Shown here in pieces: positions 4,851-12,452 of a DNA stretch of 64,000 nucleotides; position 1 is the first letter of the stretch, and each line of letters opens with the position of its first letter. Source of the stretch: Corallochytrium limacisporum Hawaii (taxonomy: Eukaryota > Protista > Pluriformea); the NCBI GenBank assembly GCA_002811645.1, contig PDIP01000043.1, positions 191,807-255,806 on the forward strand, given 5' to 3'. A program made the translations under genes and the position numbers. The notes under the pieces were generated by a model, which worked only from the letters and a program-made list of their open reading frames with translations, had not been told where the DNA came from and ran no database searches.

Positions 4851-7472
4851 TTACCTAAGGTTTTGAAGTAACGTCTTCGTAACCTGACGTCCACGTTGCA
4901 AATTCAGAAGGCGTGTACGTTCGTTGGCCAAATGGGCTCCGTCCGAGGACTGACCCATGGGCATATGCAGTGCTTTGGCTCCAAATATTTGCTCAAGGTA
5001 TGAAGTCATAGGAATGGAACCGCCCTCACGCGTAAGGAATGGCGCTTTGCCCCAATGTTCCTCAATGGATTGGGAAGCGGCCTGGAAAAGCGGGGAATTG
5101 TAGTCCCCCTGCCACCAGTCACCAGTGTCGGCATCGGTGACAGTCAGTTTGTTGCCGGATCCAATCTTGGCCATAATGTCCTCCAAATGCTTCTGAGTTT
5201 TGCTAACCACGTCGTTGATACGTTGCGAGGCCACAATACGCATGCTGACCTTTGCGGTTACCTTGTGTGGTATGACAGTATCTGTACCTGGACCACTGCT
5301 GCGAACGCTGTGGATAGAGCAAGTTGGTTCTCTCCAGCGCTTCATCAGAAGCTCACGGGAGTCCTTGGTGACCACGGCCTCCAGGTCTTCACCAGTACTG
5401 TACTTGAGCTCAGCGTCCTGGAATTGATCGTACAAAGCTTCCTCGTGAGATGTTAGAGGTGCGACATCATCGTAGAAGCCAGGTACAAGGCATTTGGCTT
5501 CGGAATTGACCAGGGATCCAAGCAGTTTGGTCATGTCACTGAAAGGTTCGTTGATTGTACCACCTTCGATACCACTATGCAAATCAGCATTCTGGCTTTC
5601 CACCACTATGTCGAATCGGACCACACCACGCAGGCCATATATCAGACAAGGGTGAGTGTCACCAATCCAATAGGAATTGGAGATGAGAATGTAGGAAGTC
5701 TCGCCAAAGAAGTCGAGATTATTGGCCATCAGACCGCGGAAGTCCTTGGAACCAATTTCCTCACTGCCATCTACCACAAACCCAACGTTGACATCTAACT
5801 GGCCCATATCCAGAAGATCACGAACGGCAAATATCATAGCAACAAGGGGACCCTTGTTGTCTGTGACACCACGACCATACAAGTAACCGTCGATACCGCG
5901 CAACTCGAAAGGATCTGTTCGCCACTGCGTCGCTCCTGCGCGAGAATTGGCTGGCTGCACGTCGTAGTGGGCATAGATGAGCACCGTAGGTTGGGACTTC
6001 GGATTTTCTTTGGCATCAAATCGGGCCATGACAATCGGAGGTGACTCGTCACTCGAGGCATCCAGCTTGGTTTCCGCACCCAGGCTCTCGAAGCACTCTC
6101 GCAGGTATTGTGCGCAGTCCCAGCAGGCATTGATGCATGATTCCTTAGCGCTGACTGTGCGATACGCAATCAATTGTTCGAGAACAGCATACATGTCATC
6201 TTCCGGATTGAACAATGTGGGGAGCATGTCTTCGCCTTCGTTTACATTGGTGGTTGCCGTCTCCAAGCTGATCTGCCAAACACGTAGTTCTCCGTCTCCT
6301 CCTCCACTAACAAAGTGGTTCTCTCCTGCTGGCGTGATGGACAGTACAGGTCCACTGTGGTCAGTCAGGCTGTCCACGATGGTGTATTCCGGATTCAGGC
6401 AATGAATAAGCCCGTCCGCAGACGCACTGAAGAGGAGATCATGCGCATAGCAAAGAGCAAGCACATCATCATTGTGGGCTTTCAGTTTCCGACGACATTT
6501 CAAACTCTCCCCATCCCAAACTTTGATGCATCCATCCTGGCCCGCGCTGATGATGAGGCGGCCGATTGTAACTATAGAGAGAATCCCACCATCATGGGCC
6601 GTAAAGGTGGTCCTGAGTTGCAACGGTTCGTCCCCATCGGGCGCCACGCGCCAGATCTTGATACTTCCGTCTCCGCCACCCGATACCAAGTGAAATCCAC
6701 CTTCTGGACCCAGCCTCAGAGAAGCTAGCGAGTACACATAACCATGATGGCGTACCTTGTAAGCTTCTGAACTGTCAGGAGCAGGAGTGACCTCCACAGT
6801 ACTCATGACCTCGTCCGGGACAGCTGTCACGGTACCGTTCATGTGATCTGATGGACTATTCTTGACCACCAGATTCGAGATGTCGATAACTTGAATGCTA
6901 TTGTTTTGGCATCCTGCAAACAAATAGTCGCTCTTCGGCAAGATTTCCAGTCCATAAATGTCCCCTACAGGATTGGTAAAGTGATACTGTGCCATTAGCA
7001 TCAGGGACTCCGGAGTTGCCCGCCATGCCTTGATATATCCGTCCCCAGACGACGTGAAGAAGAGGTTTCTCTCTTCACACATAAATGTGGCAAGAACAGA
7101 CTTCTCATGGCCCTTAACAGAGGCCACTCTCAAATAGGTCTCCGCATTCCATGCAGTTACTTGCCCGGACTCAGTGGCGGCATAAATATAGGAGTCTCCA
7201 CACGCCGTACTTAGTACCGAGTCGGCGCATGTTAGAGTGTGTACGCATTTGATGTTCACGTATTGAACCCGTTGCAGCGGTACGCGGGGCTTCCGCTTAA
7301 TAACCTGCACAGTGGTCGCATCATCAAGGACCACCGTAGATTGCTTTCTCATTATAGAATTTCCCGATTGTATCCGTGCGTCAGTTGGCCGAACTTCGAC
7401 TAGGTGGTCATCGGCTGAGAGCGGCTCGGGACCATTATGACGAGGAGCACCCTTGTATTTAGGGGAATTCAT
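4851..7472 (-). CDS. DUG2: WD40-repeat + M20 peptidase-like protein (Dug2 type, glutathione degradation)
   Basis: N-terminal WD40 repeats (GH...SGDGYIKAW, SGGGDGSIKIW); M20 motifs YAHYDVQP, GRGVTDNKG, SEEIGS, SNSYW, DLHSG, GAHLANER. Confidence 0.88.
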   Translation of the reverse strand: MNSPKYKGAPRHNGPEPLSADDHLVEVRPTDARIQSGNSIMRKQSTVVLDDATTVQVIKRKPRVPLQRVQYVNIKCVHTLTCADSVLSTACGDSYIYAATESGQVTAWNAETYLRVASVKGHEKSVLATFMCEERNLFFTSSGDGYIKAWRATPESLMLMAQYHFTNPVGDIYGLEILPKSDYLFAGCQNNSIQVIDISNLVVKNSPSDHMNGTVTAVPDEVMSTVEVTPAPDSSEAYKVRHHGYVYSLASLRLGPEGGFHLVSGGGDGSIKIWRVAPDGDEPLQLRTTFTAHDGGILSIVTIGRLIISAGQDGCIKVWDGESLKCRRKLKAHNDDVLALCYAHDLLFSASADGLIHCLNPEYTIVDSLTDHSGPVLSITPAGENHFVSGGGDGELRVWQISLETATTNVNEGEDMLPTLFNPEDDMYAVLEQLIAYRTVSAKESCINACWDCAQYLRECFESLGAETKLDASSDESPPIVMARFDAKENPKSQPTVLIYAHYDVQPANSRAGATQWRTDPFELRGIDGYLYGRGVTDNKGPLVAMIFAVRDLLDMGQLDVNVGFVVDGSEEIGSKDFRGLMANNLDFFGETSYILISNSYWIGDTHPCLIYGLRGVVRFDIVVESQNADLHSGIEGGTINEPFSDMTKLLGSLVNSEAKCLVPGFYDDVAPLTSHEEALYDQFQDAELKYSTGEDLEAVVTKDSRELLMKRWREPTCSIHSVRSSGPGTDTVIPHKVTAKVSMRIVASQRINDVVSKTQKHLEDIMAKIGSGNKLTVTDADTGDWWQGDYNSPLFQAASQSIEEHWGKAPFLTREGGSIPMTSYLEQIFGAKALHMPMGQSSDGAHLANERTRLLNLQRGRQVTKTLLQNLR

Positions 7473-8320
7473 TATTTTCCGAAGGGTTCTATTTATATTG
7501 TAGAAAGTGCTTCAGGGGGTCACCTCATGTTCTCAACCTACTGCCCGCTTGGTTTCAGAGCTTTCCCAGTCAAATACAGAACGATTTACCAGGTCAGTCG
7601 TTCCTCATCGATCTAATATCCATTTACGTCTGAAATATCTTGGGCAGGCCATGGATACGCGGACTCGTCTCACTGTCTGTTTAGATCAGGAATCTCCCCG
7701 CTCCCGTGTGTATCGCAGGCAGAGCGGCACTTGCGAATTCTCCATCCGGGGAAGGGCCTCTGCCCGGCCAGCTAACAGGCCCCCCTCCCCCCGGGGTTCG
7801 GCCTCGGGGAGAGGGGAGGGGAGGAGTGGAGGCCAGTTTGGTCCAGGGTGGGGTTTGGGGGCGGGAGCCACACTCTCCCGAAAGCACTCTGTAGGCAACA
7901 AGAAGGGGAAAATGAGTCCTACTACTACCGTTTTCCCTGCGTTCCGATCCCATCACACATTCCTTTCCTTTGGAGTCGAGGAAAGATCTGTTCAGACTTT
8001 CTCATACGAGCGAATGGAAAGGTTTGGGGGAAGGGGAGAGGAGGAGGAAGGGGAGAGGACGAGGAAGGGGGGTCCAACTGGCTATCGCCGCTGCGCAGGT
8101 TTATTTAGAGGGTGGGCAGAGCATACCCACACACTTTTACCCACATCCGTGTGTGGTGCATGACACAATTCTTGCCGTTTTTAGGTGGTATTCTTTCGCA
8201 CCAAAGCCTCCGACACCCGCCCCCTTCCCTCACCCCTGAGAATAGGAAATCGTCGTGCGATGTGCGGTTCTCCTTTTGGGTTTTTCGTTCGTGCTCTTGG
8301 TCGCGCGCATAAGCCGGCCG

Positions 8321-9534
8321 GATGTCGATGGGATTTCGCGGTGTCCCCTTTGGTCCTGAGTATCGCAGTATCGGCGCGTTGCGGCTTCAACCCCGGTCGT
8401 GCTTCTGACCAATTTCTCGATTCTCTTTTTTTGGTTCTGCTGCACCTGGGCGTAAGCGAAGAATGCAAGATACACGTGCGATTGGACACGAGTGGAAAGG
8501 GGTTCAAATTTCGGACTAAAGACTGTCAAACTCGGGCCAAAGCAGGGGCAAGCTGGAACACACGGACAACACCCACAGACCCACAAGAGGGGAGGACGCC
8601 AAGTTCCGGATAAGCAAGTTTTGGCCGGAGCACGGCCAGTCAGTACTTCATGCCCTTCTCACTGGGCAGGGCCGGCCTGATCTGAATTTGCCTTTTCCAT
8701 TTACTGTCTGTTTCCCTCTCTTTCCCCTTGCTTCCTCGCGGTGCTGTGCGGAAGCGGGAGATCCTGTAACTCTGAAAGTCCCCTGTCCCCTAAAAGCGGA
8801 AAGGAACCAGAGCCAGAAATTTGGTTAAGTCTTTCGAGTGCACGTAAAATCATCGCCAGTGGAGGGGAGCGCAGGTGTGCGTAGTCTTCAGAGCCTGAGC
8901 CACTCTTCCGAGAAGGACTTTCCGTAAGGAGCGGTAAAAAGGAAAAAAGAAAATGGAAGGAGACGGTAGATTGTGGCTATACATGTGCACTCACGACTAC
9001 CAAATTTCTGACACTGATCGGGTGGGGACAAGAGTCCTTTCAGAGGACCAGGATCACGCTCCATACATAAACTACGACCAACGAAAATTGTAAAAGGCAG
9101 ATAGAGAGTGTTGAAGTGGTATCGGTCTCTACTCTGGCGTCAGTTTCTTCGACTTAGACTATATGGTGGCGGGGGCACCGGATCGCTGCCGTTTGCAGCT
9201 GGCAGTAGTGAGTATATGGTCACATAGCTCGAGACTTTCCTGGTCGGACCCGAGAACGGAGAGGGCGGTGGTGCAATGCCACGAAAGTGATGAGGGAGCC
9301 TTTTTGGGATCTTTATTTTGTGTTTGTTTCGTATTTGAAATACAACGTTATTGAATCATTAAAATATCTAAGTTTTGGTCAGAACAAAATCGCGAAAAAG
9401 AGATCTTACTGAAAATCAAAGGGGACCATGTTCCGGCATACCGACACCGCATTTATATTTGTATAGGGATATCGCGAACCAATTTACTGACGTAGACTTC
9501 ACTTACGTTCGGATTGGCTGAAAGCCTCGATATC
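8321..9534 (+). other. Candidate long structured RNA (5' leader, leader intron or ncRNA) upstream of the GH47 gene
   Basis: Twelve nested complementary segments including a perfect 12-bp helix 8814-8825/8999-9010; see findings. Confidence 0.6.
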
Positions 9535-9537
9535 ATA

Positions 9538-11406
9538 ATGAAGCTGAACATTGCTTTGAGGCCCATAGTAAGAGGCCTAAGCGTGGCAGTATTGTTCGGA
9601 ATTGTATACTGGCTTTCAAAGGGGTTTGGACAGTATCTCTCAGAAAATCGGCCAACGTTTCAATTTGGGCCTTTGGGCTTCGAGACTGGCAACGAACCGT
9701 CAGTTAGAGCACACGAAGGTGTATCGGCGAAAGAGGTTGCGAAAGATCCTGAACATCCTTTGGATGATGATGATGACGTAGCGCACGACAAGTATGATGG
9801 CGACTTCGATCCGCAAAACTTTGGCAACAAGCCAGATGCCGCACACAAGCCGAGTTCTGCAGCCGAAACAGATCCAGATCCAGCGTTTTCGACAGTGACC
9901 TTGAATATGATACAAAATGGTGGTGCATTCAATGGGAAGCACAATGAGAAACAGCAGGCTGTTATCGATGCTTTCCGGGAGACTATGTCGGAATACCGAG
10001 CGAGTGCATGGGGTCACGATGAGGTTAAGCCTATCAGTAGGGTACCCTACGATTGGTTCGGGATAGGTTTAATGATGCTCGACAACCTCGATTTGGCCAT
10101 CATTATGGGCCAACAGGATTGGTATGAAAAAATGCATAGCTGGGTTGCGAGTTTCGACGTACATAAAGGGATGCGGTGCAATACCTTTGAGACCACCATT
10201 CGCGCCCTTGGTGGGGTTCTATCGGCATACTATCTTACTGGGGACGAAGTTTTCCTTGACGTAGCTCGTAAAATTGGTTACCCGTTGGTGGACAGCACCT
10301 TGCACCACGGAAACAAGATTCCAGATCAGTGGGTCAACCTCGTAACCGGAGGAACGCCTGGAGTTGTGACCAACCTGGCAGAAGTGGGTACCCTGCAACT
10401 GGAATGGACCTACCTTTCCTATGCGGTTCAAGACCCGTGGCCCGCACAGGCTGCGCACCAGATTTATGAAGAGATTTGGAAAATTGCAGAGGATGGTCTA
10501 GTAGATGCGGTCCTAATAGCTACTCCCACATTGCGTGGTAGTGGTCCGCGGTATACCATGAATGGTGGTAGTGACAGTTACTATGAGTATCTACTAAAGT
10601 TATGGATCCAGACTGGTAAGACAGAACAACGTTACCTGGATGAGTACGTAGCGGCAATTAGGAACTTCAGGACGCATTTCATGCGACAATCGCAAACGTC
10701 GAAGCTCTGGTATATAGGTGAATTCGGTAGAGACAGTTCGGGCAATTTTTTCGAGGCAGAACCGATGATGGAGCATTTGGCGTGCTTCCTTCCTGGCACA
10801 TTGATGCTTGGTTGGTACCACAATGTTCCGGATCGTGACGAACATCGTATTATGGCCGAACGACTACTGGAAACATGTATGGCTATATACGAGACGCCAA
10901 CGGGCCTGGCACCGGAAAATGTCTACTTTGGCTATTCTGCTAAGGGTAGACACTTTGATCAGTATCCTGATGTTGTGGTATCTTCGAAGGGCCGGGTCAA
11001 TCACTTGCGACCGGAGACTGTGGAAAGTCTCTGGTACTTCTACGTGATCACGGGTGAGAAGAAATGGCAGGACTATGGTTGGAAGTACTTCAATGCATTC
11101 CATGAGCATGCTAGACTACCAGAAGGTGGCTATGCTACCGTTGTCAATGTTTTTGACGTCCCAGCGAGTCCCTACAACAAGCTTCACACATTCTGGTCCG
11201 CAGAGACACTGAAGTATTTCTTTCTACTCTTTGCAGACCACGATGAGCAACCTTTCCCGCTGAATAATTACGTCTTCACCACGGAGGCCCACCCATTGCC
11301 TGTCCTGGGTGGTCGCTTTGACGGCCACACAGACAAGAGAGACCTCGACAGAATCCGCCGCAGGATCTACCATCGTATTCGTCGTGCGCACGAGACTATT
11401 GCATGA
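9538..11406 (+). CDS. Class I alpha-1,2-mannosidase (GH47), type II membrane protein, MAN1B1/Mns1-like
   Basis: N-terminal TM; AWGHDEVKP, FETTIR, DSYYEYLLK, HLACF, LRPETVES, AETLKY, FTTEAHP; first ATG at 9538. Confidence 0.95.
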   Translation: MKLNIALRPIVRGLSVAVLFGIVYWLSKGFGQYLSENRPTFQFGPLGFETGNEPSVRAHEGVSAKEVAKDPEHPLDDDDDVAHDKYDGDFDPQNFGNKPDAAHKPSSAAETDPDPAFSTVTLNMIQNGGAFNGKHNEKQQAVIDAFRETMSEYRASAWGHDEVKPISRVPYDWFGIGLMMLDNLDLAIIMGQQDWYEKMHSWVASFDVHKGMRCNTFETTIRALGGVLSAYYLTGDEVFLDVARKIGYPLVDSTLHHGNKIPDQWVNLVTGGTPGVVTNLAEVGTLQLEWTYLSYAVQDPWPAQAAHQIYEEIWKIAEDGLVDAVLIATPTLRGSGPRYTMNGGSDSYYEYLLKLWIQTGKTEQRYLDEYVAAIRNFRTHFMRQSQTSKLWYIGEFGRDSSGNFFEAEPMMEHLACFLPGTLMLGWYHNVPDRDEHRIMAERLLETCMAIYETPTGLAPENVYFGYSAKGRHFDQYPDVVVSSKGRVNHLRPETVESLWYFYVITGEKKWQDYGWKYFNAFHEHARLPEGGYATVVNVFDVPASPYNKLHTFWSAETLKYFFLLFADHDEQPFPLNNYVFTTEAHPLPVLGGRFDGHTDKRDLDRIRRRIYHRIRRAHETIA

Positions 11407-11522
11407 GCAACGAATGTACAGCACTCGACGAGTCTATCGGAGCCTTGACCTAGCACATAGATAAATTCATAGCTGCCTAGAGATCAGGAGGGAATTCATA
11501 AGCAATCCATTTTTGATATTTA

Positions 11523-11540
11523 CGCACGCACGCACGCACG
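11523..11540. repeat. (CGCA)n tetranucleotide repeat
   Basis: cgcacgcacgcacgcacg read directly. Confidence 0.75.
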
Positions 11541-12452
11541 AACCCCCTGACCAGAAGATCTTCAGGACTCTGGGGAGATATCCACCCGGCTGCCAGCACT
11601 GACATCCACGAATCCATCGATCTTTATCTGAGACCTCGCATTGTCGAGGGCGACTCGATGACCACACTGCCTCTATATTACAATGATCGTGGGCAGAAGT
11701 CTATCTTAGTAGAGCCAATAAAGGCCCATGTTGAGCACAAGTATTTCACCCTCAATATCCAACAGTGTGAGAACTGTGCCCACTTAGCCTCACTTGTCGG
11801 CCTCTGGTCAGCGGCGTCCCAACACACACACCTCCCCCCACCTCACCTCGTTCCCCGGGCCCCCTACCGCAGGGGAGTCCATTTTCGCGCCAATTTTGTT
11901 CGCTTCCGACCGGAGTGTGGCTGTTGGAGACCCGTTCGACAAGCACACACACGAGCCCCAGCGGGCGAGGCAGGCAGGTGTGGGGAGTCACAACAGAACG
12001 GCCAGGCGGAACGAAAAATATTCTGGGGAACGCGTAAAACCGAACACAAACCGTTCAATCGGGGTACCATGTAACGATGATGCCTCACTGGAACATCATA
12101 GTCTTTAGCGTACATCGCATTCTAGTGGGCTTGGGCTGCAGTGGTCATCTGTTGCCACGTATGTTGGCAATTCAGGGGTGGGAACGGAGTCCATCGTGTG
12201 CACCCGTATCAGGCCTGATCGCCTGTGCAAGCACATTGTGTGTCCCACCAGGCTCCAAATGGTACTTGACTTAGTCACCATGGGAAAATCAATTGCAATG
12301 AGAACTTCTCTCTCTAACGCAAACGTTGAAATCAATCTCAACAGCGAAGTACGGCTACACACATCTCTCGGCATGCGCTAAGTTTCGTCAGAGAGACTAC
12401 TCCTGAGAAATCTCACTGATCTAGGAATAGTGACAGCAGAGAAAAGAGAACA

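Follow-up and report, generated by a model that had tools for sequence, protein, structure and literature searches.

The region analysed lies in a 64-kb window (the whole stretch of 64,000 nucleotides) of a genome of 24.1 Mb in 286 contigs, whose telomere repeat is TTAGGG. The element described here occupies a 2-kb gap between the end of a DUG2-like gene at 7472 and the start of a GH47 ER mannosidase gene at 9538, in a part of the window where the genes are long and intron-free; EukProt is the sole record of the window's proteins. The upstream neighbour is a divergent WD40-M20 (DUG2-like) gene, and the closest homologues of the mannosidase are found in animals (~42% identity). Two purine G-tracts are located on the + strand at 7806-7826 and 8026-8059; such tracts are rare in the window (five in 64 kb). 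They resemble the tract upstream of an snR30 candidate elsewhere in the genome and are possible promoter elements. At position 7780 both DNA runs have A where the assembly has C, a probable assembly error. The features of the gap and its downstream gene are as follows.

8343-8354, +: strand of an outer helix, partner 9415-9426 inside the mRNA leader (ensemble, shuffles and axis test)
8528-8632, +: upstream hairpin, stable on this strand only (z -3.65 on +, -0.84 on -)
8712-8724, +: 5' half of an alternative terminal helix, partner 9283-9298 (P 0.8-0.9)
8713-8881, strand undefined: RNA contig of 169 nt, depth 2, run X4 (DNA carry-over possible)
8750-8845, +: 5' strand of a long interrupted arm, the proposed oversized 5' hairpin (helix P 0.94-0.99; z -4.4/-6.4)
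8846-8982, +: apical three-way domain with hairpins 8862-8889 and 8898-8978 and an A/G-rich loop (centroids)
8983-9062, +: 3' strand of the long arm (helix words of the first-pass annotation, ensemble pairing)
8994-9017, +: 24-nt complement to the 5.8S 3' end/ITS2 start of the genome's rDNA (13 Watson-Crick + 11 bp)
9065-9070, +: candidate H box (ACAUAA), 2 nt past the arm base (sequence)
9098-9136, +: inserted hairpin between H box and 3' hairpin (P 0.97-1.0)
9157-9221, +: candidate H/ACA 3' hairpin, with basal stem 9157-9165/9213-9221 (9 bp) and upper stem 9185-9190/9201-9206
9180-9184 and 9207-9213, +: candidate guides within the 3' hairpin, fitting LSU U2791/U2792
9222-9227, +: candidate ACA box plus 3 nt, the predicted 3' end in the H/ACA model (sequence)
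9283-9305, +: 3' half of the alternative terminal helix followed by T5, a Pol III-like end in a rival model
9393-9537, +: mannosidase 5' leader, 145 nt (RNA contigs)
9428-9466, +: uORF of 12 codons in the mannosidase leader (sequence)
9538-11406, +: GH47 ER alpha-1,2-mannosidase (MAN1B1/Mns1-like) coding sequence, 622 aa, a neighbour outside the element

RNA contigs from two independent samples and studies placed the start of the mannosidase transcript at 9393 and, in both samples, its 3' end at 11746-11748, while the DUG2-like transcript extended to 7430 or 7574. Between 7575 and 9392 no contig was found in the two samples besides the one of depth 2, which differs from the assembly once (T8767C, in an internal loop). 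This RNA evidence consists of contigs of unrecorded library type, which carry no strand information and drop rare isoforms. The first-pass annotation had described a 1.2-kb nested RNA fold closing 3 nt before the mannosidase start codon, and had put forward an IRES or shunt leader, a structured leader intron or an independent ncRNA. As the mRNA starts at 9393 in both samples, the element falls outside the main transcript, and the contigs of the two samples showed neither splice joints nor gaps, which argues against an intron; the start also effectively coincides with the position near 9400-9500 that the annotation itself had named as incompatible with its proposal. A leader role is thereby refuted as far as the main mannosidase transcript is concerned. 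The words of the helix said to close just before the ATG are indeed present, but its 5' half lies ~1,070 nt before the point where the mRNA begins, and the estimate of about ten upstream ATGs agrees with the 11 present in 8321-9537. A 14-nt perfect complement to LSU 2796-2809 is located within the mannosidase leader at 9407-9420 (E 0.04); this LSU stretch adjoins the H/ACA target predicted below, and the match is possibly due to chance. A C/D guide at the same position was rejected, as the box spacing is wrong.

All helix words listed in the annotation were found at their coordinates, and comparison with shuffled sequences bore out its fold for the inner arm: the segment 8750-9065 folded better than shuffles on both strands, at -113.4 kcal/mol on + (z -4.41) and -119.1 kcal/mol on - (z -6.38). 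The perfect helices of at least 7 bp formed a chain with a total of 43 bp, compared to a shuffled maximum of 21, and no other Watson-Crick inverted alignment in the window scored as high as the arm (102, runner-up 77.5). In the ensemble, six of the seven arm helices had a pair probability of 0.94-0.99. The inner part of the proposed fold (8750-9062) is thus clearly beyond chance, but most of the outer helices are not.

Folding of the arm was nearly strand-symmetric, with mismatches favouring the - strand: on + there are five C.A versus two G.U oppositions, contrary to the statement that the wobbles are G-U on that strand. Confident pairs numbered 86 on + versus 71 on -; in long folds the + strand was lower in energy, and its loops are A-rich. 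According to the centroids the apical domain is ordered on + and mostly open on -; folded alone, it was no better than shuffles. Both GNRA hairpins of the annotation exist as sequence, but the ensemble prefers competing helices. The two arm halves differ by transversions at 10 of 17 differing positions and by six indels in ~100 nt, nearly all one-sided base additions, which leave perfect helices of 7-12 bp with loops between them. Pseudoknot formation by the A/G-rich loop with the pyrimidine tract at 8690-8737 was considered and dropped as low-complexity pairing.

Outside the arm, the 10-bp helices 8343/9417 and 8403/9375 were modestly non-random (P about 0.005-0.01), and among 1252 centres that of the arm alone had two outer helices on its axis. 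Among the outer pairs only 8343/9415-9426 formed in the ensemble (P 0.98 on +), alternatives displacing those starting at 8403, 8595, 8686 and 8321. Flanking windows of 320 nt folded no better than shuffles, and windows of 110 nt were at background except for 8530-8640 and, weakly, 9305-9414. The well-supported structure spans about 0.3-0.6 kb rather than 1.2 kb, and the hairpin at 8528-8632 may be part of a longer 5' region. Its loop holds a tandem 8-nt C/A-rich template-like unit (CACCCACAG-like) at 8566-8588; this repeat is unique in the genome, forms no genomic array and is unrelated to the TTAGGG telomere.

The element was compared to known families and repeats. Rfam scans at E limits of 1 and 10 returned nothing beyond chance matches, in line with the annotation, which had recognised no known family. 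A search of the 24-Mb genome for copies returned one match, the element itself; a multi-copy MITE or foldback transposon was thus rejected, the element being single-copy with no dispersed copies. RNase P/MRP RNA was rejected as the element has no pairing CR-I/CR-V set for P4 and both genes are found elsewhere in the genome, and SRP RNA as the element has no Rfam match to it and the gene is on C15. Candidates for U1, U2, U3, U4, U5 (weak, E 0.04) and snR30 likewise turned up at other loci in genome-wide searches. A telomerase RNA was rejected since there is no TTAGGG template and no corresponding 7-mer within 6000-12000, snR30/U17 since the element lacks m1 and m2, the motifs that pair with 18S ES6 (the candidate on C268 has both), and a miRNA or siRNA precursor since no Piwi domain was found in the genome. 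For 7SK, the element gave no Rfam match and the search for HEXIM no match, though the control also gave none anywhere; GGAUGU is present at 8320, with no downstream 3' partner seen. The region contains no tRNA, the element shares no promoter word with other ncRNA genes, and, as regards protein remnants, its open reading frames are all short. A metagenome pattern match was discarded as an unrelated perfect palindrome and the viral matches (16 bases) as chance; there was no phage match.

The independent ncRNA, which the annotation had offered third, is still the most likely of its three readings, and we consider a separate structured RNA gene at this locus probable, albeit shorter than 1.2 kb and with H/ACA-like marks that had been missed. 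An H box (ANANNA) in the hinge alone occurs in 14% of cases by chance. An H box together with any ACA hairpin of the right geometry was found in 0.42% of natural windows and in 0.47% of shuffles, while 0.13% of shuffles matched or exceeded the total score of the element; on the - strand, an ACA hairpin of H/ACA geometry is absent. The distance from pocket to ACA is 15 nt in the U2792 register and 14 nt in the U2791 register, within the range of 14-16 nt for the class. When the genome's own rDNA was scanned, the best pocket target was LSU U2791/U2792 in helix 83, with a complement of 7+5 or 6+5 bp including three G-U pairs, a score that is equalled by chance; the 5' guide is weak (5 bp, two G-U). 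By motif alignment, U2791 corresponds to tomato pseudouridine 2716, which is 14-22% modified (PMC9483110, supplement), and to Arabidopsis U2703, assigned to snoR95 (PMC8351944, supplement). Among the ACA hairpins on both strands of 125 kb, the site ranks 6 of 60. If the boxes are held single-stranded, the H/ACA fold becomes the minimum free energy structure, ~1 kcal/mol above the free fold. The genome also encodes dyskerin/Cbf5 and has an snR30 candidate at another locus.

From these features, the element can tentatively be read as a large snR86/snR10-like box H/ACA guide snoRNA, for which we see slightly less than an even chance. Built on the observed arm, the motifs with their spacing and the absence from the mRNA, the mechanism that we infer would involve an independent, non-polyadenylated + strand RNA gene between the DUG2 and mannosidase genes, the RNA having its 3' end at ~9227 and its 5' end at ~8710-8745 or up to ~8340. 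Presence at depth 2 only in poly(A)-type RNA contigs is what would be expected of a non-polyadenylated RNA. Cbf5/dyskerin with Nop10, Nhp2 and Gar1 would bind the ACA and H boxes, and the pocket of the 3' hairpin would flank a uridine in LSU helix 83, with 5 bp 3' of it and 6-7 bp 5', presenting U2791 or U2792 for conversion to pseudouridine. The pocketless 310-nt 5' arm could then be a lineage-specific expansion (cf. snR86 and the P12 of RNase P) or a processing domain (cf. snR10).

Several results weigh against this assignment. In context, the 3' hairpin makes up 0-35% of the ensemble, where it competes with a rival arm at 9061-9219 in which the H box is buried. Folded by itself, the hairpin has no advantage over shuffles (z 0.0). 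The 3' flank from 9228 has a C+T fraction of 0.40, versus 0.63-0.82 after seven other ncRNA genes, and the sense strand of the genome's real RNAs folds 14-42 kcal/mol better, an advantage that the arm lacks. The Rfam H/ACA models gave no match to the element, RF00410 (SNORA2) gave none in the genome, and the H/ACA motif was noticed post hoc, when about a dozen families had already been considered. Because of the minority hairpin fold, the weak guide, the flank, the strand symmetry and the post hoc discovery, we have not filed the element as an H/ACA member.

Among characterized RNAs, yeast snR86 is an H/ACA snoRNA of ~1000 nt whose 3' hairpin guides one LSU pseudouridine and whose sequence is poorly conserved outside the 3' part (PMC2551606). 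Like snR86, the element has a very large 5' region, a candidate H box and a candidate 3' hairpin with a predicted LSU target; unlike it, the element has another predicted target, no sequence match and an extra hairpin inserted after the H box, and is known from sequence. In yeast snR10, the 3' hairpin guides pseudouridylation and the 5' hairpin has a role in the processing of pre-rRNA (PMC2879522). The 5' arm of the element likewise carries a pre-rRNA complement, but whereas the snR10 element comprises 7 nt, the candidate's complement comprises 24 nt, is directed at the 5.8S/ITS2 junction and lies hidden within a 12-bp helix. With animal telomerase RNA, the element shares an oversized first hairpin with a three-way junction at its apex and, downstream, candidate H and ACA boxes, but it has no TTAGGG template and no P6.1-type hairpin was seen in it. 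In snR30/U17 (SNORA73), a long 5' hairpin is followed by the H box, an internal hairpin, the 3' hairpin and ACA; the order of parts in the element is the same, though the m1/m2 motifs are absent. Plant snoR95 and vertebrate SNORA2/ACA34 target the same LSU stretch (Arabidopsis U2703; human U4263, 4 nt further), but both are standard two-hairpin RNAs (the SNORA2 model has 137 positions), unlike the element. If it is an H/ACA RNA, a unicellular relative of animals would have a giant guide that escapes Rfam, and its lineage would be shown to inflate its ncRNAs (RNase P RNA of 782 nt, U3 of 329 nt); this would be of value for annotation, while the mechanism would not be new.

The complement in the arm pairs with the last 9 nt of 5.8S and 4 nt of ITS2 (13 Watson-Crick pairs) and then with ITS2 nt 19-29 (11 pairs), ranking 2 of 10,662 windows in a post hoc comparison with permissive gap costs. 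It is sequestered in the strongest arm helix, of 12 bp. The duplex with pre-rRNA was calculated at -31.8 kcal/mol versus -23.4 kcal/mol for the displaced arm helix, but the rRNA's own helices (-19.3 and -7.6 kcal/mol) would also need to be opened. From the sequence, a dual-function H/ACA RNA could be imagined, in which the opened 5' arm would pair over 24 nt with the 3' end of 5.8S and with helix I of ITS2 and so serve as a chaperone for 5.8S/28S maturation, while the 3' hairpin would modify LSU helix 83. Given the post hoc search, the permissive gaps and the burial in the strongest helix, we rate such a U8-like role very unlikely, and the same applies to the corollary that the chaperone would act from the strand opposite to that used by vertebrate U8. 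If the complement were used, it would represent a U8-like large-subunit processing RNA outside animals; to our knowledge, no dual-function H/ACA RNA pairing with 5.8S/ITS2 is known in unicellular holozoans or fungi.

An RNA gene need not belong to the H/ACA class, and the element might instead be an unclassified structured ncRNA, a protein scaffold whose long arms would position apical hairpins. We find this somewhat unlikely, whether as a + strand RNA of ~590 nt (8710-9305), a multi-arm RNA of ~1.1 kb closed by 8343/9426 or a - strand RNA, although the known large ncRNAs are located elsewhere in the genome; an unclassified RNA of 0.6-1.1 kb would be a new family. The ~590-nt version would begin and end with the alternative terminal helix 8712-8724/9283-9298 (P 0.8-0.9), immediately followed by T5, the first run of at least four T past 8696; the + strand at 8697-9300 has no T4 runs and seven runs of A4 or longer, the depth-2 RNA contig begins at 8713 and the flank is T-rich from 9300. 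However, 19% of 605-nt windows are also T4-free, the terminal helix consists of a pyrimidine and a purine tract (-13.8 kcal/mol) that pair easily by chance, and no TATA-like element is shared with MRP or U3. Each singly weak, these signs suggest a possible Pol III-type RNA of ~590 nt. A longer RNA draws on the second +-specific hairpin at 8528-8632 and, in the ~1.1-kb version, on the on-axis outer helices that are unique in the window, but the latter version runs into the start of the mRNA, and folding of its outer arms is like that of shuffles. The locus could also have no RNA function and derive from a decayed DNA inverted duplication (an old foldback or dead MITE) centred at ~8910. The near strand-symmetric folding with few G-U pairs, the weak on-axis similarity extending to ~550 bp (z 1.5-2.9) and the almost complete lack of RNA coverage are consistent with such an origin, which we nevertheless judge unlikely: the sequence is single-copy, the arm halves differ mostly by transversions, with one-sided indels that leave loop-separated perfect helices, and the H box, the ACA hairpin and the apex that is ordered on + would be unexplained.

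Both remaining explanations tie the element to the mannosidase mRNA. A rare long isoform (with an IRES or shunt, or repressed by uORFs) or a leader intron would account for the 11 upstream ATGs, and the 8343/9426 helix extends into the leader; GTGAGT at 9208 and CAG at 9380 could serve an intron, and a minor or stress-induced isoform is conceivable since contigs lose rare forms. With both samples starting at 9393, no joint and 9383-9392 uncovered, this is nonetheless quite improbable. Least probable of all, to the point of being nearly dismissed, is a group I or lariat-capping-like ribozyme that would produce the sharp 5' end of the mRNA. GACUA/UGGUC, which has a bulged A, resembles P7, other segments resemble P4 and P3, and a G immediately precedes 9393, but Intron_gpI had no match in the region or the genome, a manual model required a J3/4 of 17 nt rather than 3 and made P6 impossible, the base of the arm needs the P4-like strand for itself, and the P7-like pair coincides with the basal stem of the ACA hairpin.

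The searches also located other ncRNAs of this genome. The RNase P RNA (~782 nt, C42:18189-18970, corresponding to L003:856-1637 minus) has a ~430-nt P12 insertion forming one long arm; it was missed genome-wide (E 1.1) and scored 39 bits on rescan. The snR30/U17 candidate at C268:65854-65922 (L030:1501-1569) has m1, m2 and ACA in its 3' hairpin and scores below the Rfam cut-off, with a G-tract ~470 nt upstream and a pyrimidine flank. An expanded U3 of 329 nt (L011:1338-1666 minus) and an SRP RNA with an inserted segment (L004:1441-1718) both scored under the Rfam gathering score. A pyrimidine-rich tract (0.63-0.82 C+T over 60 nt) lies directly 3' of all seven ncRNA genes checked (L002, L003, L009, L011, L013, L016 and L030), and such a 3' flank is a usable rule for ncRNA annotation in this genome. 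Genome-wide domain searches recovered no Piwi/Argonaute domain and one weak RNase III domain below the cut-off, in an ORF on C176, which suggests from sequence that RNAi may have been lost. Approximately 2.5 interstitial telomere repeats are present at C186:21696 (L032:1500-1520).
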